Below are positions 4,236-40,583 of a stretch of DNA of 64,000 bases, piece by piece. The notes under the pieces were generated by a model, which saw only the letters and a program-made list of their open reading frames with translations, was not told where the DNA came from and did not search any database. Position 1 is the first letter of the stretch, and each line of letters begins with the position of its first letter. The position numbers and the translations under genes were made by a program. The stretch lies in sequence record NC_027364.1; one strand, written 5' to 3'.

Positions 4236-4457
4236 TCATTCCTCATCACTTTCAGTTAGTATAATGCTATGTACAGTTTCCACATAGCGGTGTGTTTTGG
4301 GTGTGTTATACTTTGTAATTTCATCAAACAATTTAAACAGTGCATCTACTTCACTAAGAGCACGAATGAATACATCCATCTTGGTGACTACTCTGGAAAA
4401 CCCGCGTATGTTATTAAATTCAGAGACGTGTTCATACACAACATAGTATCTATTCAT
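4236..4457 (-). CDS. hypothetical protein
   Basis: 73-aa ORF with ATGA overlap. Confidence 0.65.
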   Translation of the reverse strand: MNRYYVVYEHVSEFNNIRGFSRVVTKMDVFIRALSEVDALFKLFDEITKYNTPKTHRYVETVHSIILTESDEE

Positions 4458-4972
4458 ATATTAAAAAGTTCCATGAATTCATTGAATAAAGAAGTTCTAA
4501 TGCACATAACAAATTCAAAATCAACATCTATGGTGTCAAGTAGTTTGAACAACTTTGGTACTAATGGATCATTCACCTCAAAGTTATGAATCAAACTTTG
4601 TTGAAACACATTTTCTTCAGTACTATAATCAATAACAAAATATTCAGCAATACCAGGTGGTGTGTAAACATCATATAAAATATGGCGGTGATGATTTGTT
4701 TTAGAACTAGGGGAATATATAAGTTCTATTTCATAAGATTTATCAGCACTGCGTGCGTAACAAACAATATCAGTACTCGTTATTTCTGAACCATCACTTC
4801 TCTCTGAAAAACAAACATCAGCATAGCGTTTTCCAGAGAGATTCAAAAGGTCATGAGTTGTTTTACCATAACAGAAATCAGTTTCAATGCGTATCACATC
4901 TTGATATTCAATTGGTCTTGTATCGCGGCGTTCACGATTAAACACTAATTTCAACAACTCATTAATATCCAT
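4454..4972 (-). CDS. EExxFQxS-motif family protein
   Basis: C-terminal STEENVFQQSLIHN. Confidence 0.7.
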   Translation of the reverse strand: MDINELLKLVFNRERRDTRPIEYQDVIRIETDFCYGKTTHDLLNLSGKRYADVCFSERSDGSEITSTDIVCYARSADKSYEIELIYSPSSKTNHHRHILYDVYTPPGIAEYFVIDYSTEENVFQQSLIHNFEVNDPLVPKLFKLLDTIDVDFEFVMCIRTSLFNEFMELFNI

Positions 4973-5172
4973 TATTTCGCCTCGATAACCTTAAGGTTAA
5001 CAAAATCACCTTTTACTTTCATGCATTTGAATTCAGTGCGAGTTTCATCCCCACTATCGCGAGGCCAATGAGTGGCAGAGTAGCACTGGTCTGGTGTTTT
5101 ATATACACCTTCACCAATAGTACGAGTGATTTCACCATTGGTGAGAACTACTGCGAGATATAAAGTAAACAT
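4972..5172 (-). CDS. small exported/membrane protein with two Cys
   Basis: start at MFTLYL (AAGG SD); ORF track gives 5229. Confidence 0.6.
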   Translation of the reverse strand: MFTLYLAVVLTNGEITRTIGEGVYKTPDQCYSATHWPRDSGDETRTEFKCMKVKGDFVNLKVIEAK

Positions 5173-5182
5173 GATATTCGCC

Positions 5183-5329
5183 TTAGAATAATTTATTAAT
5201 AATAATAGCACCCAACGCAAGAACTGCAATAATTACAGATACCCACATTACTGCATTCACTGTACCAGTAAGTTCTTTATCAAACTCCCTGCACTTCTTG
5301 CGGTAATCTTCCCACTCTTTGTTATTCAC
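5183..5329 (-). CDS. small membrane protein (48 aa, not in ORF track)
   Basis: GTG start overlapping upstream TGA; MNNKEWEDYRKK...C-terminal TM. Confidence 0.55.
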   Translation of the reverse strand: MNNKEWEDYRKKCREFDKELTGTVNAVMWVSVIIAVLALGAIIINKLF

Positions 5330-5541
5330 ACTGCCACTCCTAATAGGTCGGTAGCTTTCTTGAGTACTACGTCAATGGTTTCCAGTACTGCACCTTTGTG
5401 TTCAATTGATACAATATTATTATAAGTATCAAGGTCCAAGTACTCCATATATTCAGTTTTGAATACACGAACATCAGTACTAGTGATTTTAATATCACAA
5501 CCTTTATCCCAAATAACCTGCATCATTTCATTGGTAGTCAT
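5326..5541 (-). CDS. hypothetical protein
   Basis: 71-aa ORF coupled to neighbour. Confidence 0.65.
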   Translation of the reverse strand: MTTNEMMQVIWDKGCDIKITSTDVRVFKTEYMEYLDLDTYNNIVSIEHKGAVLETIDVVLKKATDLLGVAV

Positions 5542-5816
5542 TATTCAACCTTATCATAAACAAGTTTGTGTGTGCTTAGTACTTTGTTGTGATGTCCAGG
5601 GCATTCATATACATACAATCGCTCCTGTCGTTTTTCCCAACCACCACAGATACGACCTGATTGTGTACATACCTCATACTCGTTAATAAAAGACTTACCT
5701 GTGAATGTACAATCCTGACGAACTAAGTCTTTTGCACTAAACCTGCCGTCATCATTACATGCTGTAAGAAACATTGTACAGAATACAAAGACAACTGTCA
5801 ATAGTTTTTTAATCAT
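5541..5816 (-). CDS. putative lipoprotein
   Basis: lipobox FLTAC; extra Cys residues. Confidence 0.7.
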   Translation of the reverse strand: MIKKLLTVVFVFCTMFLTACNDDGRFSAKDLVRQDCTFTGKSFINEYEVCTQSGRICGGWEKRQERLYVYECPGHHNKVLSTHKLVYDKVE

Positions 5817-6181
5817 TGAACATCACCCCAACGGAAGCCATTCATATAATTCAAATTCACCTCAACGAGTTCATGTGTTTTTGTACACCAAATTGATAGA
5901 GTTTTTGTAACATCACCAGGTGAACTTTCATACTTCACACAATACCCTTCAATGCGAAGAGTTTTGTTAGTCCAATGTTGCCACTCAATCCAAATTTCAT
6001 TAGGATAATAAACCATATCTTCCTTGAACCTATGGTATTGATCCATCGGTAAGTGACCTTCAACTTCAATTACTTCAGCACTTCGAACAAGTTTGTCAAG
6101 CTTGTACTTTATCTCAGCAAGATATTCTTCATCATTCAGACGAGTTAATAAATCTGCTGCACGTGTTGTATCAAGGCTCAT
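5813..6181 (-). CDS. hypothetical protein
   Basis: 122-aa ORF coupled to neighbour. Confidence 0.7.
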   Translation of the reverse strand: MSLDTTRAADLLTRLNDEEYLAEIKYKLDKLVRSAEVIEVEGHLPMDQYHRFKEDMVYYPNEIWIEWQHWTNKTLRIEGYCVKYESSPGDVTKTLSIWCTKTHELVEVNLNYMNGFRWGDVQ

Positions 6182-6183
6182 TG

Positions 6184-6429
6184 TTATTCTCCATGAATTA
6201 CGGAAGTGTTGATTCGTGTTTTACCGCTAGTGTATCCAGTACTTGTATTTGCATTAGGACAGTACACAGTGTATAAAGTCGCACCAGCACCATCTTGTTG
6301 CATACGATAAATCTTACACCCTGCTTCTTTTAATTCAGCAGGTAGAACAAAATCACTTGTACGTTCTTTGGTAGAAGCATCACATGCAGTGAGTAGAAAT
6401 GCGACGAGTACTGCTACGATATATTTCAT
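6184..6429 (-). CDS. putative lipoprotein
   Basis: lipobox LLTAC. Confidence 0.7.
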   Translation of the reverse strand: MKYIVAVLVAFLLTACDASTKERTSDFVLPAELKEAGCKIYRMQQDGAGATLYTVYCPNANTSTGYTSGKTRINTSVIHGE

Positions 6430-9591: not shown

Positions 9592-10557
9592 TTAGAAATC
9601 TTCGTATTCGTACCCTTTTGCAAGTACTAGCTTCTTAAGCTTTTGCATAGCTTCACTGTACTTTCGGTGTATTGATGAACGGGATTTAACATATTTTCCA
9701 TTATCATCAACAAAACCATTATCAGCAATCTCACGAAGCGTTTCAGGTTCATATTCACCTAGACCATGAACACGCTGGATAATCTCACGTTCTTTAGTAC
9801 TCAATTCGTTGGTCAGTTCATTGATAGCATAACGCAAAGGTGCACGGATACTATCAACATTGAGGTTAAAATCAGAAGCAGGTGAATGAATAATGTCACC
9901 TAATGTACCATCTGTAACACCGTCTAATGGTGCATCCAGCGAAGTGTATTCGCTTTGAAATAACAAACAATTATTAACATGCTGAATCTCAATCCCAGTA
10001 CCCTCTGAGATTATTTCAGGAGTTGGGCGAACACCATGTTTACGCATATATTCCTGACAGAATCTTTTTACTTTGATCTTATGAACACTCATATAACGTG
10101 GGAAGTGTACCATATAGTTAGCGTCAGAACTTTCGTTATAGACTGTCATGTAAATACTAGAAGAAGCATAGGTAATGAACTTAACATTCTTATTAAGATC
10201 AAAGGTTTTTAGTGCTCTCATGAACCCCTCAACACCATATGAAATCTTATCTTCAAATGGGATATAACAAGTACATTTACTTGCTACATCAATAATCAGT
10301 CCATAATTGTAACGAACTAACAGTTCAGTGTTTTTCTTTACATTGATACCAGCTTGAATATCACGAATTAGATCTTCATTGGAAACATTTGGTGGTCGCT
10401 TAAGTGTAATATTATATTTGAAACTGCTTTGTACTTTACCTTCATTTTCATCTTTATCTTCAACGAAATCTAAGGCTTCTAGTGTGTTGACTTCTTCATT
10501 AGCAAAACATTCATCCAGAACTTCTTCGGCAATTGTATTTAAATCAAGCTTTTTCAC
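9592..10557 (-). CDS. sigma70-family RNA polymerase sigma factor
   Basis: region 2 (N.GLI...EG..RA...FD...KF.TYA), region 3 (RPT.E...SLDAP), region 4 (LS.KERE.I...GL...TL.EIA). Confidence 0.9.
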   Translation of the reverse strand: MKKLDLNTIAEEVLDECFANEEVNTLEALDFVEDKDENEGKVQSSFKYNITLKRPPNVSNEDLIRDIQAGINVKKNTELLVRYNYGLIIDVASKCTCYIPFEDKISYGVEGFMRALKTFDLNKNVKFITYASSSIYMTVYNESSDANYMVHFPRYMSVHKIKVKRFCQEYMRKHGVRPTPEIISEGTGIEIQHVNNCLLFQSEYTSLDAPLDGVTDGTLGDIIHSPASDFNLNVDSIRAPLRYAINELTNELSTKEREIIQRVHGLGEYEPETLREIADNGFVDDNGKYVKSRSSIHRKYSEAMQKLKKLVLAKGYEYEDF

Positions 10558-10578: not shown

Positions 10579-11076
10579 TCAAAATCGATATACATTAATA
10601 TTATCATCTGTGAAGCAATCATGGTTGTGCACATCCATGAAAGTACTAAACACTTTATCATATAAAGTTGTATGTTCTTCATGAATAGCAGCATCTAGCA
10701 TGTATTCTCCACCACTTCCCATAAAGAAAGTGTAGTCTTCATGTAGATATTCAAGTTTTTTAATAAACTTTCCTTTAGTTAAAATCATATGAATAACATA
10801 ATCTTTAGAAAGAAGCACACAATGGCAACTTAACTTTCTGTCAGGTATAACTGGTACTTTATTAATTAACCAATCCAGTACTTTATCAATTTCACTTACT
10901 ACCCCACTAGCACTGAATAAACGGTCATGTACATATAAAGTTTTTTGATTAACAACTCCATATTGATATTTTGGTCTTAGTGGGAAAAAACCAAATAAGT
11001 TTCGTGGTATAGTTGACGTAACTCTAGAATCGGTAATCAATAAATTTAATCGTTTATCAATATAAACAGTTGTCAT
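10579..11076 (-). CDS. HslV/proteasome-beta-like Ntn hydrolase
   Basis: N-terminal MTT, DSRVT, SG, GSGGEY match the HslV layout. Confidence 0.6.
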   Translation of the reverse strand: MTTVYIDKRLNLLITDSRVTSTIPRNLFGFFPLRPKYQYGVVNQKTLYVHDRLFSASGVVSEIDKVLDWLINKVPVIPDRKLSCHCVLLSKDYVIHMILTKGKFIKKLEYLHEDYTFFMGSGGEYMLDAAIHEEHTTLYDKVFSTFMDVHNHDCFTDDNINVYRF

Positions 11077-11077
11077 A

Positions 11078-11497
11078 TTAAACCTTATCTAAGAATTTAT
11101 CGTATATATAAAATTCTTTATCGGTGAATACATTAATTCTAGTATCGAATCTTTGCATTGTGTTCATATACAATGAACTTTTTAAATAAAAATACAAAGC
11201 AACAAATTCTGATATATGCATATTCTTTTTATTGTTACATAAATTCTTAAGCATTTTGATGCTATCAAATTCTTTTTCATCAAATCTGTATTGGTAAAAA
11301 TTGTATCTATTGGAACGGCACTCATAGATACGAAGTGCCATTATATCAATACATGCTTTAGATTTACAGTACTTATTCAATACGTCATAATCACCCGTAC
11401 ATAATGCTACAAAGATTTTATGTGCGAGTGTAGCTTTGCCTTCAATCGTATAATAGCCAAAAAATTTAATGATTAAGTACTGAATGAATGTAATCAT
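11078..11497 (-). CDS. hypothetical protein
   Basis: 139-aa ORF. Confidence 0.65.
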   Translation of the reverse strand: MITFIQYLIIKFFGYYTIEGKATLAHKIFVALCTGDYDVLNKYCKSKACIDIMALRIYECRSNRYNFYQYRFDEKEFDSIKMLKNLCNNKKNMHISEFVALYFYLKSSLYMNTMQRFDTRINVFTDKEFYIYDKFLDKV

Positions 11498-11502
11498 TTG
11501 AT

Positions 11503-11763
11503 TTAGAATTTCTCCGAAATTACTAGAGTGTCATCATAATCTTCTGCAATATCATGAAGAACTTTTAAGTTACTTTCACCAGAAACGCTTTTTACTTCGT
11601 TCAAAAGATAGTTTAGATCAACTTTAGTTACTTTTTCTGAATCAAACACACAGAAAGTTAATTCAGCGTTTGGACAGATCTTCTTCAGATTATCAGCAAC
11701 AACTTGTTTGAAGTTGAAAGATGGGGAAGCAACCAGGTTAACTGCAACGAGAATAGATTTCAT
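11503..11763 (-). CDS. hypothetical protein
   Basis: AAGGA SD, strong promoter upstream. Confidence 0.75.
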   Translation of the reverse strand: MKSILVAVNLVASPSFNFKQVVADNLKKICPNAELTFCVFDSEKVTKVDLNYLLNEVKSVSGESNLKVLHDIAEDYDDTLVISEKF

Positions 11764-28656: not shown

Positions 28657-28687
28657 AAAAAAATACCCAGTACTTGACTGGGTATTT
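28657..28687 (-). terminator. intrinsic terminator
   Basis: AAATACCCAGT-CAAGT-ACTGGGTATTT + TTTT. Confidence 0.75.
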
Positions 28688-28699
28688 ACAAAGTAACGT

Positions 28700-28849: not shown

Positions 28850-28871
28850 TACTTCTCCTATTGGATGTTTT

Positions 28872-29668: not shown

Positions 29669-29733
29669 TTATAAATCCTCTTACTTTATATGATTAAAAT
29701 GCCCCATCAAAAATGATGAGGCGGTAAGATAAA

Positions 29734-29943
29734 TTACTTACGATTTGCTTTACGCAGTTCAGATAGTTCTTCTTGAAGACTTTTCTTCCATGCAATCAAG
29801 TGAGCAAAACGGATTGGCCTTGCACCAGTACCGTGGAATACTGCTAGAGCTTCTTCTGCTTGATGAATCTGGAATTGAATGTAGTTCACAGTGCGGTCGA
29901 AGTCGGTGATATCTAGTACTTGTGCGTTAGTTTCTTTAGCCAT
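29734..29943 (-). CDS. hypothetical protein (own promoter and terminator)
   Basis: 69 aa, AAGGGG SD. Confidence 0.7.
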   Translation of the reverse strand: MAKETNAQVLDITDFDRTVNYIQFQIHQAEEALAVFHGTGARPIRFAHLIAWKKSLQEELSELRKANRK

Positions 29944-30058
29944 TTTAATACCCTTTTATTTCTTTTTTATGAAAAACCCTCATCATTGAGGAATGGTTTG
30001 CATTTTAATATCTGCCGATAACAAACATTATATCACAATATCTGTTCTTGTCCAATTT

Positions 30059-30355
30059 TTAATTATTAGAAAGAACAATTTTTGAAACTGGTAAATCTGT
30101 ATCATTTACACGTTGTTCATTATATCCATTCTGTACAAGAATGTCAATAACTTTAGACTTATCAATTGTAAATGATTCTAACATATCATATCGGTAATAA
30201 CCAATAGTCTGACTGAACTCATATTTTCCTGGCTGTTGACGACAACACGTATTTGTTTCAGCCATAATCTTATTGATTAGGTAATATGTTTCAGTACTAT
30301 CAATATTTGGAATATAGATCTTATCATCAAAATGAATTACTTCATGTTTATTCAT
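30059..30355 (-). CDS. hypothetical protein
   Basis: start moved to MNKHEV; ORF track gives 30418. Confidence 0.6.
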   Translation of the reverse strand: MNKHEVIHFDDKIYIPNIDSTETYYLINKIMAETNTCCRQQPGKYEFSQTIGYYRYDMLESFTIDKSKVIDILVQNGYNEQRVNDTDLPVSKIVLSNN

Positions 30356-30617
30356 AGAGTGATTCAATCTCCGCTTTAAGAATGGAAATGATCTCTTTCT
30401 GAAGGCCAGTAATTTCACTGTTCAAAGATGATAGTCGCTTCGATAATGCCATGAATTGCTTTGCATCTTCTTTAGAACGGTCATTTCGTACTTTATCAGA
30501 ACTCCAGTTAGCATATGATTGCTCATCTTTCCTGTTAAGGATATCCCAGTCTAAACGTACTAGTTTACGTTCTTTCTTCAGTTCGCTTAAGCGAGATTTC
30601 ATTTCGTCTTTAGTCAT
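30348..30617 (-). CDS. coiled-coil hypothetical protein
   Basis: 89 aa, charged helical composition. Confidence 0.65.
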   Translation of the reverse strand: MTKDEMKSRLSELKKERKLVRLDWDILNRKDEQSYANWSSDKVRNDRSKEDAKQFMALSKRLSSLNSEITGLQKEIISILKAEIESLYE

Positions 30618-30907
30618 TAGATTGTTCCTTTCATGAAGTCTGGAATAACGATTACGATAGGAGGATTATACTCTACATAACCATTTTTTGTCAATAGACT
30701 TTTAATATCTGAAATCACATTATCATGCTGTTCAATATCTTTATCACAAAAGATTTCTAATTCTTTCTGAAACGGTTTTTTAACCGAGATGTTTTGAGTC
30801 AGTGTTTGGATTCTCTGTAACATATCAATTGGATCTGGACTGAACTCATTACCAACATAAAGAGTACCAGATGCATCTTTTTCTAGCAAGACTTCTAAAA
30901 TTTTCAT
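30617..30907 (-). CDS. hypothetical protein
   Basis: 96-aa ORF coupled to neighbour. Confidence 0.65.
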   Translation of the reverse strand: MKILEVLLEKDASGTLYVGNEFSPDPIDMLQRIQTLTQNISVKKPFQKELEIFCDKDIEQHDNVISDIKSLLTKNGYVEYNPPIVIVIPDFMKGTI

Positions 30908-31740
30908 TTCGTATCCTTCAATTTACTAAAGTTTTCTCGTGTAAATCCAGGAACTGGAAAATATACATCACAGTCAACATCAGGATTCATAATTACCATG
31001 TCATTACATATTATATCACGAATTTTACTGCCGTCCACGATTTTTTGCATTAAATCATTCCATTTTTTACGAGAAATAACGAATGTACTAATTATACATA
31101 AATCATGTCCACGTTTTGAAATATATCCTAGTACTTCATTATCGTAAACAACACGTATGGTAACTTTTCCAATTGTAACCCCTCTTACTGGATTAATACT
31201 AGTATCTTCAAAAATTAATTCTAATTTAAGTTTACCATTCGAAATAAGTGATGAAGTATATTTAGAAACCATTTTATCAATTTCTTGAGTCAAATCATCT
31301 CTACCTAGATATTCAAATACAGAATAAGTTAATTCGTCTGCACCTAGCTGTTGGATAGTTGGAAGCTGTGCAACCATATCTAAAGATACAGGTTCGATAT
31401 ATATTCTTTCAATATCAGAAGATTGTACAAATAGACAACCATCAGGTGTCGTATCTCTAACAATTTCGGCATAATATGTATAAAGATAAAAAACATTAGA
31501 CTCGGATGAGTCAGTTTCTACCCAAATCTCAGATTGTTTCATTTCATCTTTATGAAGAATTCGTTGAGTAAATCCTATGTAAAAACCAAGATATAAATCA
31601 TCATCAGTTTCAAACGGATTAAACATCAAATACGGATATTTGTCAAGGTACTCATTGAACTTACGCTGTACATCTCTATCACAATCCATGATATACTTTC
31701 GGAATTCAGAAATGATTATTTTTTCTAATGACATAATCAA
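30904..31740 (-). CDS. hypothetical protein
   Basis: 278-aa ORF. Confidence 0.75.
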   Translation of the reverse strand: MIMSLEKIIISEFRKYIMDCDRDVQRKFNEYLDKYPYLMFNPFETDDDLYLGFYIGFTQRILHKDEMKQSEIWVETDSSESNVFYLYTYYAEIVRDTTPDGCLFVQSSDIERIYIEPVSLDMVAQLPTIQQLGADELTYSVFEYLGRDDLTQEIDKMVSKYTSSLISNGKLKLELIFEDTSINPVRGVTIGKVTIRVVYDNEVLGYISKRGHDLCIISTFVISRKKWNDLMQKIVDGSKIRDIICNDMVIMNPDVDCDVYFPVPGFTRENFSKLKDTK

Positions 31741-31934
31741 TCCTCAAGATGCATGTAGTACATAAACATCGCCAACCATATAAAAAACCCGAAACAACGA
31801 AGTAAAATATCAATTGTTGGATCTGTCCCACCATTAACTTGGTAAACGATTACTGGGATTGAAGAAATAGCAATAGACACTGTACATAAGATGAATGCAA
31901 CAAACACCTCAAACATAAACTTAATCGTTTCCAT
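31737..31934 (-). CDS. 2-TM membrane protein
   Basis: hydrophobic segments. Confidence 0.65.
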   Translation of the reverse strand: METIKFMFEVFVAFILCTVSIAISSIPVIVYQVNGGTDPTIDILLRCFGFFIWLAMFMYYMHLED

Positions 31935-32493
31935 TATTATCCTTCAATGTGTAGTGTAGTACATCTAAAAAGTTATACATTGATTCATTACGCACAACCT
32001 TGATTGTTAAATTACGACAACCCAACATACGTTTGAGGCGACGCTTCACCGCAGTTAAATCATGTGTACTATTCGTATACAGACCATTAACCTGACCTGG
32101 AACAGTTGGCACATGAAGAATGTAATCATAATTCATTAGTAAGCGTTGATTATATTTCTTTAATGCTTGCTTGTATTCTGAAATATTTTCAAAGAATGTA
32201 CAATAACGGTCGTAACGATTCATTTTATTCAAAATTGAAATACGAAAAGCGTTACCACTATTCCAATCATCTTCAGTTGGGTTTGGGTTGATATGTGCCA
32301 TGTTAGCTGTACTGTACCCACCACTTGTGAAAACTTCAGAATATCCATTCTCAAAAACATACAATGTTGCTTTGTGGCCTCTGAATTTTTTACGGTACTT
32401 TGACAGTACTTGAATGTGATTACGCTTGGACTTGTACATCTCGTAACCTTCATAATCTGAACTGAATTCACAAATTTTATCAACACCAGCCAT
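31921..32493 (-). CDS. hypothetical protein
   Basis: 190 aa, GAGG SD, strong promoter. Confidence 0.75.
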   Translation of the reverse strand: MAGVDKICEFSSDYEGYEMYKSKRNHIQVLSKYRKKFRGHKATLYVFENGYSEVFTSGGYSTANMAHINPNPTEDDWNSGNAFRISILNKMNRYDRYCTFFENISEYKQALKKYNQRLLMNYDYILHVPTVPGQVNGLYTNSTHDLTAVKRRLKRMLGCRNLTIKVVRNESMYNFLDVLHYTLKDNNGND

Positions 32494-32525
32494 TTCGTAT
32501 ATCCTCGTTTAATTAATATAGGAGT

Positions 32526-32554
32526 ATTATACATACTCCATTTTCATGTGTCAA
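32526..32554 (-). promoter_or_regulatory. promoter TTGACA-N17-TATAAT, -10 inside an inverted repeat
   Basis: perfect consensus. Confidence 0.85.
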
Positions 32555-32694
32555 GCTTTATAATACGGAAGACTTTTTACTAAAGATTCAGACGTATTAT
32601 TTTTTACCCATGTACTACCGTTGTCATTAGATACGTATCCAGTACCATTAATAAATTTACGCATAATACCAGTAAAAATATTAGTATACACCAT
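32551..32694 (-). CDS. 47-aa protein (not in ORF track)
   Basis: MVYTNIFTGIMRKFINGTGY...; TAATG coupling. Confidence 0.45.
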   Translation of the reverse strand: MVYTNIFTGIMRKFINGTGYVSNDNGSTWVKNNTSESLVKSLPYYKA

Positions 32695-32891
32695 TACTCA
32701 GTATCCTTTGGTTTAGAATGTAAACCATACTTTTCATCATAACGATCATAGGTAGTACCATTAGTACTAGCTTTGATGCTTTCAGTACGATTGATTGGTT
32801 CAATCTTAACACCACGATAACCAATCTCTTCTTTAAATTGTTCCCATGATTCACGTAGACTCATTTTAGCCCCTTTTGTTATTTCATACAC
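32694..32891 (-). CDS. hypothetical protein
   Basis: 65 aa; start possibly MSLRES. Confidence 0.55.
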   Translation of the reverse strand: MYEITKGAKMSLRESWEQFKEEIGYRGVKIEPINRTESIKASTNGTTYDRYDEKYGLHSKPKDTE

Positions 32892-33024
32892 TCACGTAGG
32901 TCAATCTTTTCTACTGACCCACCGAGCACTAGATAGTGAAAATTAGAATCTTTGTTTGCCATATTCAAAAGATCTGCTTTCTGTTGAAGCGTAAAGCGTG
33001 AAGTACTGTTACGTACTGGCATAG

Positions 33025-33468
33025 TTACTCCTTAAAGTAGATATCACGAATTTGTTTAATCATCTCTAACTCTTGAAGTCCTATCATACCAAAGTCTTCT
33101 TGTATTGTCAACTGCTGAAAGTACATTTCTTCTAAATTATTGTACGGAATCTCAACAAGATTCAAAGGCTCACTTTCCACACGATAAATTGTATCTTGTA
33201 CATCATGTTTTTCGATATGAATACTAAATGTATCTTTTTGAATTCTAAATTTATAAAATGTTTGATTTGTTGTAAACAAACCAACTTTAGGATGGAATCC
33301 CATTTGAATACACAAACAATCTTCATCCTTATATTTCAAGTATATAGCTTTTGACGTTGCTAGTACTTTAGATTTTGGGAAATAAAAATCACCCATCAGC
33401 TTCTGACGTTTCCAGTCCTCATATACAACTGGATGCTTAACCTTCTTCAATTGGTGCAGTACTGTCAT
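33025..33468 (-). CDS. EExxFQxS-motif family protein
   Basis: NLEEMYFQQLTIQEDFG. Confidence 0.7.
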   Translation of the reverse strand: MTVLHQLKKVKHPVVYEDWKRQKLMGDFYFPKSKVLATSKAIYLKYKDEDCLCIQMGFHPKVGLFTTNQTFYKFRIQKDTFSIHIEKHDVQDTIYRVESEPLNLVEIPYNNLEEMYFQQLTIQEDFGMIGLQELEMIKQIRDIYFKE

Positions 33469-33848
33469 AGTTTTTTCCAGTCCAATGAATCGAAATCGAT
33501 TTGTTCAGGATTATCAACAGCGACAACTCGTGCATTATGAAGAGTTTCAAAGTAGCCGTTCCACGGTGTACGTACTGGAATTTTTTCATCTCCAATTTTT
33601 ACAAAGAAAGAGAATTCACATGACATTGGATCAAACCATTCTTTATGTTTGGCTTCATCGATTATTGTCGCACGTTCGTTACTATATGCATCATCGAGTT
33701 TCTTAAAGAATACCCAATGCTCTTTCAAAGACTGTAATGCTACAACTGCCTCATCCTTTGATTCCCATTGAACATCCAATGTATTGGTAACTGAATCTTC
33801 AGTTTCAGTGTCCCCTGTAGTGTAATGTACTTCAATGCTGTATTTCAT
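33465..33848 (-). CDS. conserved phage hypothetical protein
   Basis: Y.I.V.YTTGD...W...A...L....EH...W.GYFE.L...+V pattern. Confidence 0.7.
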   Translation of the reverse strand: MKYSIEVHYTTGDTETEDSVTNTLDVQWESKDEAVVALQSLKEHWVFFKKLDDAYSNERATIIDEAKHKEWFDPMSCEFSFFVKIGDEKIPVRTPWNGYFETLHNARVVAVDNPEQIDFDSLDWKKL

Positions 33849-34303
33849 TAATCATCGCCTTTTAGTAATTTACAAATTTCAATCATATGATAATAACATG
33901 TATTCCAAAATTGTCCATTAGTACTTCCAACATCATGCACAGTACTTTGTTGGAAAACATATTCATCGTTGAACATCATTTTAATATCATCAATGTAAAA
34001 TTCTGGTTTTGAATCATTATTGTATTCAATACTCGTTTCACCATCTGGATCAAGTGAAATTGATGATATGTCGTGAATTCCTCTCGGATTTGTTGGATAA
34101 ATTCTCAACGTAAGAGGATAGAAGTCTGGATCGGTTTCATAAGTATATTCGATTATGTAATAACCATCACCAGTAATTGATTGATATTTAAATGTAGTTT
34201 CAATTGAATTTGAGATGTTAAATCCCAGTTTCTTTATCTCATCTACATGAGATAATATTTTATGTAAAGTTCCTAAAACATGAATCAAATTATCAATTTT
34301 CAT
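33848..34303 (-). CDS. EExxFQxS-motif family protein
   Basis: NDEYVFQQSTVHDVG. Confidence 0.7.
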   Translation of the reverse strand: MKIDNLIHVLGTLHKILSHVDEIKKLGFNISNSIETTFKYQSITGDGYYIIEYTYETDPDFYPLTLRIYPTNPRGIHDISSISLDPDGETSIEYNNDSKPEFYIDDIKMMFNDEYVFQQSTVHDVGSTNGQFWNTCYYHMIEICKLLKGDD

Positions 34304-34842
34304 TTACGAACCTTTGAAAAGTTTAGTTTAAAAGATTTACCAAATTCCATTGTAGCTTTACCCAGATTGTTAATATTTTCCTTTAACATTTCTTGCATCT
34401 TATTCATACTTTCAATCCAAGCTTCTTCTTCGATACGAAGAATTGGTCGCAATCGTTCCTGAATATCGATAAAACGTGTATTGAGTTCTACTAATGATTC
34501 ATATGTGAAATCTTTCATGTCGATAATAGTACTTCGTTGAAAGAATTCTTCTTCGGATAAATTACTTAAAATGATTTTATCACGACCAATAGATAATGTC
34601 AATTCATCATCTTTATTTTTTTTAATTACAATACTAACAGGTGTTTTTAATGTAATGCAAATATCATGATTATTAAATGTTTCAGTTTGGTTTGACATTC
34701 TGAATTGAAGTTTCCCAGATAAAGCATGTACTGGTGATGGTTTCTTTTTACCAGTAATAACATCTTCCCATGAATCGAGAATATTATTAATAATTTTAAC
34801 ATAAGGAATTGGCATATATGCACCTATGAAAAATCCACGCAA
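34300..34842 (-). CDS. EExxFQxS-motif family protein with coiled-coil tail
   Basis: LSEEEFFQRSTIIDMKDFTYESL. Confidence 0.7.
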   Translation of the reverse strand: MRGFFIGAYMPIPYVKIINNILDSWEDVITGKKKPSPVHALSGKLQFRMSNQTETFNNHDICITLKTPVSIVIKKNKDDELTLSIGRDKIILSNLSEEEFFQRSTIIDMKDFTYESLVELNTRFIDIQERLRPILRIEEEAWIESMNKMQEMLKENINNLGKATMEFGKSFKLNFSKVRK

Positions 34843-34857: not shown

Positions 34858-35388
34858 TTATTCAAGTATAGTAATTTCAATTAAACGAATTTCGATAAAC
34901 TCGTTTTCAGTTTCCCATGACGTGCCAAATTTCTTTTCAAGTTCAGATTTCACATCACTTTTAAATTTTCCCATAGTATTAGGAATAATTTGTTTGGTTA
35001 ATTTGTCGTAACCACAATAAAACATAGGTTTCTCCCTTCGAGATATTAGCTGAACAAAATCTTTTGGATATGCAGGTATGTTATGCATCACTTCATGAAT
35101 ACACTCAGTACTTGAATCTTGTACTTTGTACATTACATTAAGTTTACCTCTGAAATTTGCGGTCATATCAACAATAGTTCCTTTACCCGATTTAAGTAAA
35201 GTTCCATTCTTTGAATGAGAGCAATAAAATACCTCATCACCAATATTAGGATAATACAAATTAAATTCTAATTCAGATTTTACAGCCAGCCGTTTGAAAC
35301 TTTCTGTACGTTTTATATAAGTTTGGTATTTGTTTATGTTCAAAAGAATATCTCTCTTAGTAAATGTGATATAACTGGCATAGTCCAT
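34858..35388 (-). CDS. hypothetical protein
   Basis: 176 aa; overlaps MTase 3' end, start uncertain. Confidence 0.65.
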   Translation of the reverse strand: MDYASYITFTKRDILLNINKYQTYIKRTESFKRLAVKSELEFNLYYPNIGDEVFYCSHSKNGTLLKSGKGTIVDMTANFRGKLNVMYKVQDSSTECIHEVMHNIPAYPKDFVQLISRREKPMFYCGYDKLTKQIIPNTMGKFKSDVKSELEKKFGTSWETENEFIEIRLIEITILE

Positions 35389-36200
35389 CCATTCCCAAGC
35401 ATTTTGTATGCTTGTGTCTTACTAGACACTTTAAAGAAATCTTCAGGAACACCCTGTAATTTACAACATTCTACTACACTTAAGTGTCTATAGTCAATAT
35501 TTCTTTTGCCATTCTCTAATAGATATTGACGACTGATCACTGGGTCACGAAACACCAATTGTCGTCTGGATTTATTAAAGTACTGGTTACAATCACCACC
35601 TTTAAAATAGTTAGCATCTATACAGTACGAAGCGGTTCTGTCAGTGTACCAACCATCTTCAATAATATCTTGAAGTTTAGGTGCATTGGATAATGCAGGT
35701 GGTATAAAAAGCTTATCAGTACTGTACCAGTAATATCTCTGCCTGAAGTGAGGCGTATAATGCTGGGAGTTTATCAGTACTGGCGTGATTCCTAAAATAC
35801 TATTAATGTATTCTTTGAAATCTTCTTTCATTTTAACATTTTCAAACAGAAATTTCAAGTTAGGATTAAGACTTTTGATATGATCAAAAATTTCAACCAT
35901 TACTAAAAATAACTGCCCACGTATATCATTTAAACCACCCTGTTTACCTGCTACTGACCAGGCTTGGCATGGGAAACCACCCATTAATAAATCTATTTTG
36001 TCCCACTCAATATCCCATTCTCTCCACTTAGTTACATCACCCAATTGGATAATATCAGGAAAGTTAGATTGAGATTCAGCTATTGCGTACTTATCAATTT
36101 CGGATGAATAATATTTTTCAACTGGGATACCAGCATCTTGCAATGCCATATATCCCACACTCATTCCATTAAAAAGAGAAAGTACTCGGATAGGTTTCAT
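35340..36200 (-). CDS. DNA (cytosine-5)-methyltransferase
   Basis: motif I SLFNG, IV GFPCQ, VI ENV, VIII RQRYY, X GNGW. Confidence 0.92.
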   Translation of the reverse strand: MKPIRVLSLFNGMSVGYMALQDAGIPVEKYYSSEIDKYAIAESQSNFPDIIQLGDVTKWREWDIEWDKIDLLMGGFPCQAWSVAGKQGGLNDIRGQLFLVMVEIFDHIKSLNPNLKFLFENVKMKEDFKEYINSILGITPVLINSQHYTPHFRQRYYWYSTDKLFIPPALSNAPKLQDIIEDGWYTDRTASYCIDANYFKGGDCNQYFNKSRRQLVFRDPVISRQYLLENGKRNIDYRHLSVVECCKLQGVPEDFFKVSSKTQAYKMLGNGWTMPVISHLLREIFF

Positions 36201-36857: not shown

Positions 36858-37298
36858 TTAATTGAACTCTACTTCTGGATAATGATTATAGAACATCTCA
36901 CGAACTGCGTCAAGATGTTCTTGAAATTGTTTTATATCTTCTAATGATGGTGCATCAATAACAGTGCTAAGTTGAAACAACGATTCTTCTGTGTTATATA
37001 GTGACATATCAAATGAGTTATTGTTGTCATCAGTTATGATATTATCACAAATTTCGTATGTGTCAATACAAACATCATCAAGTGTTGTATTATCATATAC
37101 AGTGTATACGAATACAAAAATAAAAGAAGAATGTTCTTTACCATAACGCGGTGGGTCATATGTCACATAGCATTTGTGGTCAAATGTATCGAGTTCCATA
37201 GACACCACCCCAGCTTCACGATATTCATTAGTTTCACTGGTAAGATCCGGTATTGATGTTATCGAAAGTAAGTGGAGAAATTTACTTGGATTTAGCAT
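36858..37298 (-). CDS. EExxFQxS-motif family protein
   Basis: NTEESLFQLSTVIDAPSLEDI. Confidence 0.7.
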   Translation of the reverse strand: MLNPSKFLHLLSITSIPDLTSETNEYREAGVVSMELDTFDHKCYVTYDPPRYGKEHSSFIFVFVYTVYDNTTLDDVCIDTYEICDNIITDDNNNSFDMSLYNTEESLFQLSTVIDAPSLEDIKQFQEHLDAVREMFYNHYPEVEFN

Positions 37299-37753
37299 TT
37301 CACCACCATTGGATTTTGCGACTGTATATTAAAAAGGGATAATACAAAAGTACTCAATTTTTCGAAACAATCTATTAATACATTTAACTCATCATAACTA
37401 ACACCAATTTCACGAATAAGCGATTGTTGAAAGAATCCTTCTTCGGTTAACGTTAAACTACTAACCTCAGTTATGTTATAATAACTTTGGGATGTTGTGG
37501 TTGATATTATTTGTATTGCAATCGTATCTGATGTTGTGTTGTACAGATATAAATATTTTGTTTTTCTTTCCAATGGATCTATACATGAAAGATCGATCAT
37601 GTCATAGGTTTTTCCAATAAAAATATTACAATCATCTGACAATTCACAACAAATGCGTATATGTTCTTTCGGGTCATGAACACGTTGTGTGTCAAATTCA
37701 CATGACATTGCAATTTCAAAATGATTTTTTATTTCGTCAACATTCATCTGCAC
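37292..37753 (-). CDS. EExxFQxS-motif family protein
   Basis: LTEEGFFQQSLIREIGVSYDEL. Confidence 0.7.
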   Translation of the reverse strand: MQMNVDEIKNHFEIAMSCEFDTQRVHDPKEHIRICCELSDDCNIFIGKTYDMIDLSCIDPLERKTKYLYLYNTTSDTIAIQIISTTTSQSYYNITEVSSLTLTEEGFFQQSLIREIGVSYDELNVLIDCFEKLSTFVLSLFNIQSQNPMVVKC

Positions 37754-38121
37754 CCACCATTAATTCTTATATTTGTATAGTTTAATGCTTTTTTAATAAT
37801 ACCAATTTCTGTAATTCCTATTACATTTTTCTCAATCAATGACAATTGGAATAGTTCCTCTTCGGAAATATCAATACTGTGAATTCTTGTACAATAATCG
37901 TTGAAGTCATATACATATCGTATTGTATAGTCGTTTATAGAAACTGATACAATTGCAATCCCATCATGGATGTAAGTTAGTTCATTTGAGTATCTATTAA
38001 AAATTAACCTATCTGGTGAACCTAATGGTAGTTGAAATGTATTTCTAGTATCTTGAACAATAACAAAATCATCATCTATATTTTTACTCAGAACACCCAA
38101 AATATCATATATAGTAGTCAT
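37744..38121 (-). CDS. EExxFQxS-motif family protein
   Basis: ISEEELFQLSLIEKN. Confidence 0.7.
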   Translation of the reverse strand: MTTIYDILGVLSKNIDDDFVIVQDTRNTFQLPLGSPDRLIFNRYSNELTYIHDGIAIVSVSINDYTIRYVYDFNDYCTRIHSIDISEEELFQLSLIEKNVIGITEIGIIKKALNYTNIRINGGCR

Positions 38122-38122: not shown

Positions 38123-38527
38123 TTATTCTTTACCTTCAGCAGTTCTGATAATTTTCATAACTTCTCTGGATAGTGCGTATATTTTTTTATAGTACTCAAA
38201 TGTAACTGAACCAAAATCATTAATAGTACTAGCCATGAAGAACGATTCTTCTGTATATAGTTCATTTGACAAAGCAACCAGTTCTTGGTGAAATTTTGCG
38301 TCCTTCCAATAACGAAATTCAAAAACAAATTGTCCGTCATGACCGACTCTACAACATTCAGAACGATCACTGTCTACACAGCTAAACACAATATCCCTTT
38401 CAGAGTCGTACCAGATATTTCCAATATTTGTTTCAATAACAGCATAATCAATTTTTTTAGAATTTGGAATTAAACCTTTTTTCACCAGCACTAAACTGGT
38501 ATTGTCAATATCTAGTAAACTTACCAT
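38123..38527 (-). CDS. EExxFQxS-motif family protein
   Basis: YTEESFFMASTINDFGSVTFEYY. Confidence 0.7.
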   Translation of the reverse strand: MVSLLDIDNTSLVLVKKGLIPNSKKIDYAVIETNIGNIWYDSERDIVFSCVDSDRSECCRVGHDGQFVFEFRYWKDAKFHQELVALSNELYTEESFFMASTINDFGSVTFEYYKKIYALSREVMKIIRTAEGKE

Positions 38528-38528: not shown

Positions 38529-38939
38529 TCAATTCCTCATTACTAAAGTGTTTTTAATCTCTAACAATTCACTATACATCTTCTTGAATTGTAATATATC
38601 TTCAAAAGTAATACCACCAAGATCATCAACTAATGAACGTTGGAATAAAGATTCACTTGTTTGTAATGTATCTAAATCGGTGATTTTTAATAAAGAACTT
38701 GGATTAAGTGTTTCGACTAGTAGTATGTTTTTGTATGGTACATATGTGATCTTGATGTTCTTTTTATAATTAATCTTATAAAATCGCATAATTGACGATT
38801 CATCACTTAGTTGGATAATTGGGTCGTCTTGATCATTAGACCACCATACAGTACTAGTCATATGATTGACGTGGTGGTTCAATTCTGATATGTCCAAATC
38901 TAAAAAATATTTTAGTTCATTGTGTAAATCTAAACTCAT
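38529..38939 (-). CDS. EExxFQxS-motif family protein
   Basis: TSESLFQRSLVDDLGGITFEDI. Confidence 0.7.
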   Translation of the reverse strand: MSLDLHNELKYFLDLDISELNHHVNHMTSTVWWSNDQDDPIIQLSDESSIMRFYKINYKKNIKITYVPYKNILLVETLNPSSLLKITDLDTLQTSESLFQRSLVDDLGGITFEDILQFKKMYSELLEIKNTLVMRN

Positions 38940-38968: not shown

Positions 38969-38997
38969 ATTGTAGGATAAACCCACAATAATGTCAA
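38969..38997 (-). promoter_or_regulatory. promoter TTGACA-N17-TACAAT
   Basis: motifs read directly. Confidence 0.75.
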
Positions 38998-39389
38998 GAT
39001 GTGAAATAATTATACCAGTAATATAGTTCTTTTAATTCTTCAGTACTGAACAATACTTCTTCTATTGTAGATTGTTGAAAGTGATATTCATCATTTAGAT
39101 ACATAGAAATATTACTATATACTTTCCTATTGTATTGACATAAAAAAGAAGTTTTTTGATTAATGTATTCAGTAAATGTTAATTTATCTAACTCAATATC
39201 GAATGATAATTTAATAATATGAGTATTATCATTTACATACATTAGTTTCTTTGAAAAATGATCAATTGTAATATATTCTTTATGAGAGAACTGAAATATA
39301 TTATTAAATTTATTACCATTTGTGCTTCTAAATTTTTCAAGGTAATAAGAAAGTGGTTTAATTATTGAAGTTCCAATATTGTTCTTCAT
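38994..39389 (-). CDS. EExxFQxS-motif family protein
   Basis: NDEYHFQQSTIEEVLFSTEEL. Confidence 0.7.
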   Translation of the reverse strand: MKNNIGTSIIKPLSYYLEKFRSTNGNKFNNIFQFSHKEYITIDHFSKKLMYVNDNTHIIKLSFDIELDKLTFTEYINQKTSFLCQYNRKVYSNISMYLNDEYHFQQSTIEEVLFSTEELKELYYWYNYFTS

Positions 39390-39410
39390 ATATCCTCAAT
39401 TTTAGATAAG

Positions 39411-39434
39411 AAAAATGCCCCGAAGATCGGGGCA
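39411..39434 (-). terminator. intrinsic terminator
   Basis: TGCCCCGA-TCT-TCGGGGCA + TTTTT. Confidence 0.8.
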
Positions 39435-39549
39435 GTACTAAAATGATTTTGTACCAAAAGGGGAATAAGAACAAAATGAAAATATAATAACGCATCATTA
39501 TTATGTAAGGGAGGAAAGTAACATGATATGTTAACCATTTCTGGTATAT

Positions 39550-40101
39550 TTATTTATCATTTAATTCTTTAAGTTGGGTTTGTATATCTTTAGTTATATT
39601 TCGAATTTTCTTAAAGCAATAAACACTATCGTCCAATTCGATTTTAAGTTCATGTGTAAATGCATACAGAAGTTCAGCAAATACTAAATCTTGACGCATC
39701 CAGTTTCCATCTTTATATAAAGTCATTACACAATATGGGCATTCACTATTAGAAGTTTGCTTTCCAATAAAAACACTTTGAATTGATTCATGCTTAAAGC
39801 CAATAAAACTTTCATTTATTTTTTTAATTTCAGTACTGATATCGAATTTAGCACTGGTGTTGATTGCAAAAATTTTATTCCCACTTTCATCAGTATTGAT
39901 ATTGAGTTCAATATCACTACCTAGTTTACGTACTGCTAGAGTATAAAGAAGTAATTCATACATGTCGTAACTTGTTACATTACCATTTGGTGCAATTACA
40001 TCAACACTAACACCGTGCATTTTTACTTCTGTATTAAATCCATCTTTATCAGAAAGAAAATCAGTGATTTGCTTTGTAAGGATTTTAATTTGGTCTATCA
40101 T
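39550..40101 (-). CDS. hypothetical protein (possible internal duplication)
   Basis: YELLLYT vs FAELLYA halves; AAGGA SD. Confidence 0.7.
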   Translation of the reverse strand: MIDQIKILTKQITDFLSDKDGFNTEVKMHGVSVDVIAPNGNVTSYDMYELLLYTLAVRKLGSDIELNINTDESGNKIFAINTSAKFDISTEIKKINESFIGFKHESIQSVFIGKQTSNSECPYCVMTLYKDGNWMRQDLVFAELLYAFTHELKIELDDSVYCFKKIRNITKDIQTQLKELNDK

Positions 40102-40121
40102 ATTTCATTTCCTTATGTGAT

Positions 40122-40146
40122 AAAAGCCTCCATTATGGAGGCTTTT
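40122..40146. terminator. bidirectional terminator
   Basis: AAAAGCCTCCA-TTA-TGGAGGCTTTT. Confidence 0.8.
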
Positions 40147-40154
40147 GTATTTAC

Positions 40155-40583
40155 TTAGAGAGATTCTTCGTATTCAGCAACAATCCCAACCATTTCATTA
40201 ATGAACTTGATGTGAGAATGTGTCACTGTACGGAAGTCGTAAACAAGTGACTGTTGGAAAAATACATCTTCATCAAGAGAACCATCAAAGTTCAAATCAA
40301 TGTTTTCATCGTCATTGCTTGGTGCAACTTTAATATTCAGAAGATTTTCATCAACTGCAAGTTTTACAACACAACCCAGTGCAATGGCAAGAACATATGC
40401 TGGTTTCTTAGCTTTTTCATTACGGAATGGTGCACGTAGAGCACAAAAAGTACTGCTAATCTCATCATTTGGTTCTTTGTATTTAACATTGACCATTAGT
40501 TCTTCGATTTTGACGCTCTCAATAACACGACCAGTTTCTGGAGCGAAGAAAGAATGTTCACGGATAGTTTGTTCGATATTCAT
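40155..40583 (-). CDS. EExxFQxS-motif family protein
   Basis: LDEDVFFQQSLVYDFRTVTHSHI. Confidence 0.7.
   Translation of the reverse strand: MNIEQTIREHSFFAPETGRVIESVKIEELMVNVKYKEPNDEISSTFCALRAPFRNEKAKKPAYVLAIALGCVVKLAVDENLLNIKVAPSNDDENIDLNFDGSLDEDVFFQQSLVYDFRTVTHSHIKFINEMVGIVAEYEESL

Follow-up and report, generated by a model that had tools for sequence, protein, structure and literature searches.

A massively expanded, highly diverged protein family of Rak2-like jumbo phages with one sharply conserved segment

The window analysed here, a stretch of 64,000 nucleotides that matches the genome of Escherichia phage PBECO4 at 100% (a Rak2-like jumbo myovirus; record NC_027364, positions 186001–250000), carries 21 small open reading frames (ORFs) in which a variable N-terminal part, here called the head, precedes a C-terminal part, the tail, with a common short motif. 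This raises the question whether these ORFs belong to one family and, if so, what use a phage could make of so many versions of one protein.

All of the 21 ORFs singled out in a preliminary description of this DNA were verified at their coordinates, and each carries the motif. All are on the minus strand, which makes the numbers given there as starts the stop-codon ends. RefSeq annotates 20 of them as coding sequences in NC_027364, the exception being the ORF at 19480–19908. A loose pattern of the motif matches 20 of the 357 window ORFs of at least 40 aa, all 20 being listed members, against 2.3 ± 1.5 ORFs after residue shuffling, and a strict pattern gives 12 matches against 0.01 in shuffles. 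The 21st member, gp394 (26745–27149, 134 aa), is the weakest one (HMM E-value 1.6e-11) and has a motif variant with one residue fewer. An iterated HMM search of the window retrieves these 21 and no others, even at E < 10. Leave-one-out searches with a tail-only HMM put 19 of the 21 held-out members at first rank, each with E < 5e-4, while gp394 and gp397 (28253–28645, 130 aa; E 0.11) rank second. A head-only HMM fails to recover held-out members in the same kind of search. Both AGY and TCN codons are used for the Ser of the motif, and both synonymous codons for its Glu, Phe and Gln; because the motif codons vary synonymously, the conservation is at the level of protein and not of DNA. The 21 genes truly belong to a single protein family, uncharacterised and so diverged that mean pairwise identity is about 17% and most pairs escape pairwise search. 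The notion of paralogues that have diversified but have one segment sharply conserved is therefore borne out.

The size first proposed for the family, about 21 members, does not hold beyond the window. Our whole-genome census of PBECO4 counts 64 copies (about 12% of the phage genes), of which 21, or about one third, are in the window, about 37 are in a second array at 97.8–125.5 kb of the record, and a few are single. Family members are small, about 105–220 aa. In the window, gp342 (4454–4972, 172 aa; motif at about residue 119, HMM E-value 5e-16, first rank in the tail search) is an isolated copy. The genes are found in tightly packed co-oriented arrays, in which stop and start codons often overlap. 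Further members in the window are gp380 (21395–21820, 141 aa), gp384 (23243–23602, 119 aa), which adjoins a tRNA cluster, gp413 (33848–34303, 151 aa), gp420 (37292–37753, 153 aa; RefSeq start 37747), gp421 (37744–38121, 125 aa), gp422 (38123–38527, 134 aa), gp423 (38529–38939, 136 aa; RefSeq start 38861), gp424 (38994–39389, 131 aa) and gp426 (40155–40583, 142 aa). Two members have a C-terminal extension. That of gp395 (27146–27649, 167 aa; RefSeq start 27634) is basic and about 40 residues long, and that of gp414 (34300–34842, 180 aa; RefSeq start 34815) is about 45 residues long, so that 69 and 84 residues, respectively, follow the start of the motif, where the median is 39. Pfam shows no domain in the extension of gp395 and no significant one in gp414.

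The array region also holds tRNAs, a sigma factor gene and sigma-70-like promoter matches. Such matches lie upstream of two member-containing units, directly upstream of gp376 (19898–20326, 142 aa) at 20395–20366 and, as a strong match (11/12), upstream of gp385 (24060–24413, 117 aa) at 24472–24445; taken together, promoter-like sites are no more frequent than expected by chance. For phage CBB, the equivalent region has been proposed to be early (PMC5259590). The array region is presumably an early or host-takeover region, and the family would then probably be expressed early. The ClpS-domain protein gp457 is encoded at the right end of the window.

Are these genes kept for a function? All 20 members between 18 and 41 kb of the window have syntenic reciprocal-best orthologues in phage WPEC3. 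Identity to the orthologue is 62% for gp375 (19077–19532, 151 aa) and 98% for gp394, and in gp411 (33025–33468, 147 aa) it is 66% for the head and 94% for the tail. The 142-aa member at 19480–19908, which is without RefSeq annotation, has an orthologous ORF of 53% identity, located in synteny at the position of an annotated WPEC3 coding sequence. Heads, tails and neighbouring genes have the same dS, about 0.52, and their dN/dS values are 0.33, 0.21 and 0.17, respectively. The head value is raised and yet well below 1, so that a direct sign of an arms race is absent. Purifying selection maintains every paralogue as a 1:1 orthologue, which suggests that each has its own job. Jumbo genomes have been proposed to expand by tandem duplication (Hua et al. 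2017, PMC5646251), and it could be argued from the tandem arrangement and the lack of a known function that the genes are filler, amassed after enlargement of the capsid and of little or no use. This is disfavoured, and we regard it as very improbable: all 20 members tested persist as orthologues at dS of about 0.5 with dN/dS of 0.21–0.33, the motif is kept in more than 250 diverged members across many phages, and no broken family copies are seen in the window.

The AlphaFold2 (AF2) model of gp379 (21037–21402, 121 aa; RefSeq start 21378; pLDDT 89, pTM 0.81) is one compact alpha/beta domain with the order helix, five strands, motif helix (residues 87–96) and helix (residues 104–114). The model of gp419 (36858–37298, 146 aa, last of a seven-gene run) is of moderate confidence (pLDDT 69, pTM 0.62) and has the same element order, although the structural neighbours of the two models overlap poorly. 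In both, the motif helix is the second of three helices and follows the five-stranded sheet. Among 254 members non-redundant at 60% identity (gp379 numbering), Phe91 is conserved in 99%, Gln92 in 92%, Thr/Leu95 in 93%, Glu87 in 87%, Glu88 in 82%, Ser94 in 84% and Asp98 in 64%. The heads contain a conserved position as well, Tyr56 (78% Tyr and 15% Phe), which lies about 35 residues N-terminal of the invariant Phe, and their strands show hydrophobic positions alternating with variable ones. A head-only profile built from distant relatives finds heads in 8 of its best 21 matches against 1.2 expected. The conserved Tyr and the strand periodicity thus indicate that the heads are homologous. They had been described as unrelated in appearance, which is correct for pairwise and small-profile sequence comparison, but Tyr56, the periodicity and the common element order argue for homology.

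On a helical wheel the three variable positions of the motif helix (89, 93 and 97) share one face, while the conserved residues span about three quarters of the circumference. It is this wheel pattern, and not the model coordinates, that suggests a largely buried core helix. In the predicted models, the proteins look like a single compact domain whose core helix is nearly invariant, rather than a head joined to a separate docking tail. The layout of a variable head and a constant docking tail, as put forward in the preliminary description, is not recovered, since AF2 places the motif helix inside one domain and yields no independent tail module. The same description held that its model would be refuted if the tail were a buried structural core with no binding partner; the wheel comes close to that picture, but the near-invariant polar residues (two Glu, Gln, Ser and Asp) exceed what simple core packing would call for and hint at a possible shared functional site.

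Such a site is what an adaptor library would need, in which the conserved helix-loop-helix docks on a common partner and the variable part recruits targets. The most concrete candidate for this partner is the phage Clp machinery, as PBECO4 encodes a ClpS-domain protein (gp457), a ClpA-like double AAA+ ATPase (gp539) and ClpP (gp105), and the family would in that case deliver chosen host proteins for degradation. Docking would be in line with the near-invariant polar residues of the motif helix and of the stretch behind it, a ClpS-like gene belongs to the core gene set of 72 Rak2-like phage records, the same clade as the family, and phage ClpS has been proposed to bring targets to ClpAP (Iyer et al. 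2021, PMC7824862). However, common descent is a complete confounder of the joint occurrence with Clp genes, the conserved residues run round most of the helix as in a core helix, and the models show a single domain. F-box, BTB and poxvirus PRANC adaptors are likewise many paralogues with one conserved segment and the rest diversified, but they consist of two modules, with a constant domain that folds by itself and docks on a known hub, in contrast to the single domain predicted here, which has the conserved helix inside it. To ClpS/SspB-type adaptors the likeness is in idea only, that of small proteins possibly bridging substrates to a phage-encoded protease; general searches, rather than a direct ClpS/SspB comparison, show no similarity to any characterised family and hence none to known Clp adaptors. 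The adaptor model with a docking tail is weakened by these points and remains weakly supported, and we consider it rather unlikely.

Our leading explanation, to which we give a chance somewhat short of even, is a conserved scaffold with variable surfaces. The motif helix and the mid-sheet Tyr would most likely form the structural core that holds the fold of N-terminal helix, five-stranded antiparallel sheet and two helices, the motif being the first of the C-terminal pair, while the outward sheet face, the exposed helix faces and the loops may vary freely. Individual members would then most likely bind different host or competitor proteins stoichiometrically, and the family would constitute a library of intracellular binders or inhibitors on one scaffold, for host takeover or counter-defence. 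This explanation leaves unexplained the shared functional site at which the polar residues hint.

Family members are more acidic than other ORFs (median pI 4.8 against 5.5, median net charge −9 against −4), the most acidic having a net charge of −26. They could therefore be imagined as acidic nucleic-acid mimics or self-assembling proteins, which would form homo- or hetero-oligomers through the conserved helices and serve as DNA or RNA mimics or as decoys for host proteins that bind nucleic acids, among them restriction enzymes, nucleoid proteins and RNA polymerase. Small size and location in a presumed early region are compatible with this, and the element order (N-terminal helix, antiparallel sheet, two C-terminal helices) is reminiscent of acidic oligomeric proteins like those of the p32/MAM33 family. 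In Foldseek, however, p32/MAM33 appears at rank 22 as a non-significant match (TM 0.25), and no mimic gives a significant structural match. Moreover, a few members are basic (pI 8.6–9.3, with 9.3 in gp395), and charge mimicry alone poorly explains 64 distinct paralogues. Ocr and Arn, which are DNA mimics, and anti-CRISPR proteins are similarly small, acidic, non-virion and among presumed early genes, but they show no sequence or fold similarity to the family and are usually single genes, in contrast to 64 copies with an invariant motif. We judge a mimic role to be distinctly unlikely.

For phAPEC6, Table 1 of the published virion proteome (PMC7247149) lists no protein between gp078c and gp149c or between gp347 and gp549, the intervals in which mapping of gene order places both arrays. 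By this proteome and mapping, family members are not part of the phAPEC6 virion. T-even internal proteins are diverse and small, share one short conserved segment, and in some cases act against host defence. That segment, a capsid-targeting sequence, is N-terminal and cleaved by the prohead protease, and the proteins that bear it are packaged, whereas the segment of the present family is C-proximal, helical and carried by proteins absent from the phAPEC6 virion. A motif serving as protease processing site or degron, by which the head is released or destruction is timed, is highly doubtful as well. Its acidic-aromatic-Gln pattern is superficially like Gln-specific protease sites and resembles the recognition site of tobacco etch virus NIa protease, and many peptidases are encoded by the phage: ClpP and a T4-type prohead protease are identified in PBECO4, and two more are annotated without a Pfam match. 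However, the phage has no annotated protease of the 3C/NIa type and none was detected in it, the models place the motif in a helix within a compact domain and not in an accessible linker, the residue following Gln is variable with the conserved Ser one position further, and the family is missing from the virion proteome.

Expansions of this kind have precedents in jumbo phages. A zinc-ribbon family of about 35 copies has been described in Bacillus phage G (Iyer et al. [quoted passage not shown] All share tandem co-oriented arrays and a sizeable part of the genome with the present family, but the latter is larger (64 copies), far more deeply diverged and without a recognisable domain, and RCC1-like proteins are found in the virion. 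It is not described in the papers on these expansions, nor did we find a description in the literature searched. Pfam, NCBIfam, PADLOC and PDB give no match by sequence or fold (Foldseek against PDB included), so that no functional anchor comes from similarity to characterised proteins; PHROGs divides the family into about 20 families, all of unknown function, and Foldseek against BFVD retrieves only uncharacterised proteins of Rak2-like phages. That the motif is not a named domain, as first noted, is thus confirmed for a family which makes up such a large share of the PBECO4 genes.

Relatives in other phages, more than 250 at 60% non-redundancy, occur in similar arrays. Among 1.84 billion proteins we find 111 clusters (50% identity, E ≤ 1e-3), nearly all with the motif. 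Scanned for the motif at the DNA level, 596 Gb of cellular genomes yield single matches only, one in each of 102 stretches, as by chance. In IMG/VR, matches of the same scan fall almost only in Rak2-like phage contigs of 345–378 kb, the examined pieces of which contain 136 members. This massively expanded, lineage-specific family is particular to Rak2-like jumbo phages. One metagenome contig carries 17 members within 20 kb, adjoining a DNA methylase as in the PBECO4 window.

The window begins at position 186,001 of the record of Escherichia phage PBECO4 (Asteriusvirus), a Rak2-like jumbo myovirus of 348,113 bp, to which the two stretches compared, of 8 kb and 23 kb, are 100% identical. It has a GC content of about 33% and carries nearly all of its genes on the minus strand. 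All 21 open reading frames (ORFs) assigned to the family in the preliminary description are found in it, every one of them on the minus strand, and since they lie on that strand the positions given there as starts are the low-coordinate (stop) ends of the genes. RefSeq lists 20 of the 21 as hypothetical proteins. The ORF at 19480–19908 (minus strand) is a family member left unannotated in RefSeq NC_027364, and it has a reciprocal-best orthologous ORF in phage WPEC3, at an annotated CDS position. This ORF shares 53 bases with the one at 19077–19532 (minus strand), so the true start of the latter is probably an internal methionine.

Analysis of the motif confirms that these ORFs share a conserved segment in their C-terminal part. 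A loose form of the motif pattern is matched by 20 of the 357 window ORFs, all of them listed members, as against 2.3 ± 1.5 matches in shuffled proteins, and for a strict form the numbers are 12 and 0.01. The member at 26745 carries a variant of the motif which is one residue shorter. An iterated profile run on the window ORFs returns the 21 members and no others even at E < 10, and all 21 score at E ≤ 1.6e-11 against the family profile, which was built from these same members. When a profile of the motif segment (the tail) was built with one member left out at a time, in 19 of the 21 cases the held-out member came out on top, at E < 5e-4. An HMM of the variable N-terminal part (the head), trained on 20 sequences, gave no signal for the held-out member; pairwise searches link only a few of the members, whose identity to the first one in the alignment averages about 17%. 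The motif starts 83–118 residues from the N-terminus, and 32–84 residues separate its start from the C-terminus. Within it, the serine codons are of both the AGY and the TCN type, and glutamate, phenylalanine and glutamine each use both of their codons. Because the codons of these residues vary, the conservation acts at the protein level; an embedded promoter or recombination signal in the DNA was rejected on account of this synonymous variation, together with that among the six serine codons.

The family is three times bigger than the approximately 21 members proposed earlier, a number which holds for the window only. In a census for which the rest of the PBECO4 record was taken in pieces and the ORFs of each were searched, the iterated profile converges on 64 ORFs, or about 12% of the genes of this phage (64 of 551 annotated): a single unrecognised family in a member of a well-known jumbo-phage group. 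Besides the 21 members in the window, about 37 form a second dense array at record 97.8–125.5 kb (about 11800–39500 of the stretch handled as locus L049), many of them 150–207 aa in length, and single copies are situated near record 29, 46, 85, 156 and 185 kb. Most of the additional copies contain the motif; around a dozen members, all but one of them outside the window, do not match the loose pattern. Adjacent members often overlap by 4–11 bases or lie 1 base apart, as judged from their coordinates, a spacing usual within operons. Upstream of 24413 and of 20326 there are strong sigma-70-like promoter matches, in a window where matches of this kind are overall no more numerous than chance predicts. 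In phage CBB, the region equivalent to the window arrays has been proposed to be early (PMC5259590). A sigma-factor gene (gp356, 9592–10557, minus strand) is located in the interval that separates the isolated member at 4454 from the arrays, as would suit a regulatory or early region.

Outside PBECO4, when 1.84 billion representative proteins were searched in full with HMMER, 111 clusters at 50% identity were recovered (E ≤ 1e-3; 62–217 aa), and the motif occupies an equal relative place in nearly all of them. In one metagenome contig, 17 members are packed into 20 kb next to a cytosine methylase gene, an arrangement like that of the window. A scan of IMG/VR with a narrowed degenerate DNA pattern of the motif, which picks up about one member in four, gives 43 stretches, nearly all on contigs of 345–378 kb; the pieces examined contain 136 members, RaK2 for example accounting for at least 22 and 121Q for at least 33. 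Over 596 Gb of genomes from bacteria and archaea, the same pattern is matched in 102 stretches, once in each and in unrelated taxa, or about as often as chance would produce. The contigs in IMG/VR and the chance-level result in cellular genomes therefore indicate that the family is specific to the Rak2-like jumbo phages. Among the 102 cellular stretches there is one plausible relative, a 61-aa ORF in Pantoea rwandensis LMG 26275 (NZ_MLFR01000023.1; 6137–6322 of the stretch handled as locus L058), which matches the family profile in its motif part only (E 5e-5). It may be a captured fragment from a phage. The ORF lies in a low-GC island (33–36%, compared with 52–57% in the rest of the stretch) adjoining an HNH endonuclease gene.

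The statement that the motif corresponds to no named domain holds for all the resources consulted. Pfam gives no match above its curated cut-offs, with a best E of 0.0095 and a best hit differing from member to member; the NCBIfam and PADLOC profiles give no match for the members, and PHROGs, rather than uniting them, spreads the 21 over 24 families, every one of 'unknown function'. The longest members were searched for an extra or fused domain as a functional clue and none was found. Nothing significant is returned by the family profile from PDB sequences, where the entry that came closest (E 0.057), a ribosome hibernation factor, was dismissed as noise. The family is not described in the papers on the PBECO4 relatives CBB, phAPEC6, 121Q, Munch, Sharanji, fEgEco12 and RaK2, nor in a comparative study of 224 jumbo phages. 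Nearly 10% of the gene products of RaK2 have been stated to be paralogues (PMC3622015). An expansion of zinc-ribbon genes in phage G, with about 35 copies, has been called unprecedented (PMC7824862), and the PBECO4 family with its 64 copies exceeds it. We conclude that this is an undescribed and very large family.

AlphaFold2 predicts gp379 (21037–21402, minus strand) as a single compact domain, with mean pLDDT of 89 and pTM of 0.81 from an alignment of 148 sequences. The model consists of a helix (residues 4–15), five strands within residues 26–79, the motif helix (87–96) and a further helix (104–114), which is the amphipathic helix noticed earlier. For gp419 (36858–37298, minus strand), which has a head dissimilar in sequence to the one of gp379, the model shows an identical order of elements at pLDDT of 69. 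Foldseek finds no PDB entry at E ≤ 0.001 for the gp379 model (best E 0.1, all TM < 0.3), and its only BFVD hits are uncharacterised proteins from the Rak2-like phages UB, CBB, RaK2 and fHe-Yen9-04; the gp419 model, of moderate confidence, has weak BFVD neighbours, one of them shared with gp379. The fold is probably new.

The preliminary description had likened the family to F-box and BTB adaptors, with a constant tail as a module separate from the head. Localization of the motif in our models does not agree with this, as the motif helix is predicted to follow directly after the sheet and to be succeeded by one more helix. In F-box, BTB and PRANC adaptors the constant docking domain folds on its own, whereas gp379 and gp419 are each modelled as one domain.

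Conservation by column was analysed in 254 members, non-redundant at 60% identity (gp379 numbering). The motif reads Thr (48%) or Ser (24%) at position 86, Glu at 87 (87%) and 88 (82%), Phe at 91 (99%), Gln (92%) or Met (8%) at 92, Ser at 94 (84%), Thr (60%) or Leu (33%) at 95, Val (42%), Ile (36%) or Leu (15%) at 96 and Asp at 98 (64%). Position 93, directly after the glutamine, is variable, with Gln (24%), Leu (19%) and Tyr (15%) as its most frequent residues. The motif helix varies only at 89, 93 and 97, which fall on one face of the helical wheel. In the strands, hydrophobic positions alternate with highly variable ones, and position 56 in the head is Tyr (78%) or Phe (15%). Read on the predicted fold, this pattern suggests that most of the motif helix would contact the remainder of the domain, the outward faces being the variable part. 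When a head-only profile was built from 51 distant relatives, its top 21 hits included 8 window heads, compared with 1.2 expected; the heads are therefore homologous, though extremely diverged. Their unrelated appearance, as reported earlier, stands at the level of pairwise and leave-one-out searches, most of which fail, but the enrichment and the shared order of elements show that the 'unrelated heads' are one fold. A working definition of the new family, which fits the 21 window ORFs, is a protein of 105–220 aa encoded in arrays of Rak2-like phages, with a helix, five strands and two helices in this order, a tyrosine in the middle strand and the near-invariant phenylalanine and glutamine of the motif helix.

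All 20 members situated at 18–41 kb of the window have a syntenic reciprocal-best orthologue in WPEC3 (dS about 0.52). Between the two phages dN/dS is 0.33 for the heads, 0.21 for the tails and 0.17 for neighbouring non-family genes. The family thus evolves faster than its neighbours yet is clearly constrained, and every paralogue has been retained. That the members are genome filler is a less likely reading. The proteins are acidic, with median pI of 4.8 and net charge of −9 (pI 5.5 and charge −4 for other ORFs of similar size); a few are basic and have C-terminal extensions. A role as nucleic-acid mimics is likewise considered less likely.

None of the 21 members is labelled as a virion protein in the annotation. 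Phage phAPEC6, which is 99.4% identical in DNA to the window over the 8-kb stretch compared, has a published virion proteome (PMC7247149), and its Table 1 contains no protein between gp078c and gp149c, nor between gp347 and gp549, intervals taken to hold both family arrays by the gene-order mapping made in this analysis. On the basis of this proteome and mapping, the family is not packaged in the virion, unlike the RCC1-like 'DNA condensation proteins' which the same proteome contains. It also differs from the internal proteins of T-even phages, which are packaged by means of a capsid-targeting sequence; their targeting peptide is N-terminal, whereas the conserved segment here starts far from the N-terminus.

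The best-supported reading is that the family is a single-domain scaffold, which would have an invariant core helix and free surfaces and would have been multiplied into a library of intracellular proteins, each with a distinct activity. As regards function, we infer that this activity is most likely the binding of host or competitor proteins in takeover or counter-defence. The adaptor library proposed earlier, in which the motif region binds a common hub and the variable part different targets, is weakened because of the single-domain prediction and the core-like conservation. It is kept in play because several of the invariant motif residues are polar, and a candidate hub is present in the Clp genes of the phage itself. 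These encode a ClpP (gp105), a ClpA-like double AAA+ ATPase (gp539) and a protein with a ClpS domain (gp457; 63684–64000, truncated at the right window edge, the gene extending to record 250229), annotated as 'ATP-dependent protease' and matching Pfam PF02617; together they indicate that PBECO4 possesses its own Clp system. The ClpP is annotated as 'head maturation protease'. A ClpS-like gene occurs in 72 Rak2-like phage records and is core to the clade carrying the family, but descent confounds this co-distribution, which is proof of nothing. We consider it quite improbable that the family is a substrate-adaptor library for the phage Clp, in which an invariant patch of acidic residues, Gln and Ser on the motif helix would dock while the hypervariable sheet faces of the 64 paralogues would capture different host or defence proteins for degradation. 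If true, viruses of bacteria would have an equivalent of the expanded F-box and PRANC adaptors seen in eukaryotes and their large viruses.

Other readings concern the motif itself, which we take to bear some likeness to potyvirus protease, sliding-clamp-binding, helix-hairpin-helix and SAP-like motifs. All four are disfavoured by the predicted helical context. A site of the potyvirus NIa/3C type was rejected, the motif being predicted as helical and the residue after the glutamine being variable; the peptidases identified in PBECO4 are ClpP and an S77 prohead protease, two more annotated peptidases having no Pfam match. A processing site or degron is a less likely role for the motif. As regards clamp binding, the segment is helical and internal in the gp379 model and Thr occupies the key position in 60% of members, both of which speak against it.

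The initial observation is thus confirmed and extended, and its interpretation in part supported. Current resources split the hundreds of diverged relatives into many 'hypothetical' families; viewed as one family, much of the Rak2-like 'dark matter' would become a single problem. This view would offer a probable new fold, would show a natural scaffold bearing near-total sequence replacement around one invariant helix, and would supply a defined candidate set for host-takeover or counter-defence functions.

Other genes accompany the arrays. A cytosine DNA methyltransferase gene lies inside the family array of the window (35340–36200) and also in that of the distant metagenomic relative (10888–11745 of the stretch handled as locus L003), so that methyltransferase and array form a conserved neighbourhood. 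Six tRNA genes are interspersed among the family genes of the window, and amid tRNA genes at 24485–26573 there is a separate mini-family of five small ORFs of about 54–66 aa (24485–24649, 24646–24810, 25615–25815, 26139–26333 and 26394–26573, all minus strand; phmmer E < 1e-4). A pair of paralogous ORFs at 1315–1665 and 2056–2415 (minus strand) has no relation to the main family. Elsewhere in the record, ten RCC1-like genes annotated as 'regulator of chromosome condensation' stand in tandem on the plus strand at 157.8–170.1 kb (21841–34100 of the stretch handled as locus L047), and probably represent the array of very similar tandem genes that has been mentioned in connection with 121Q.
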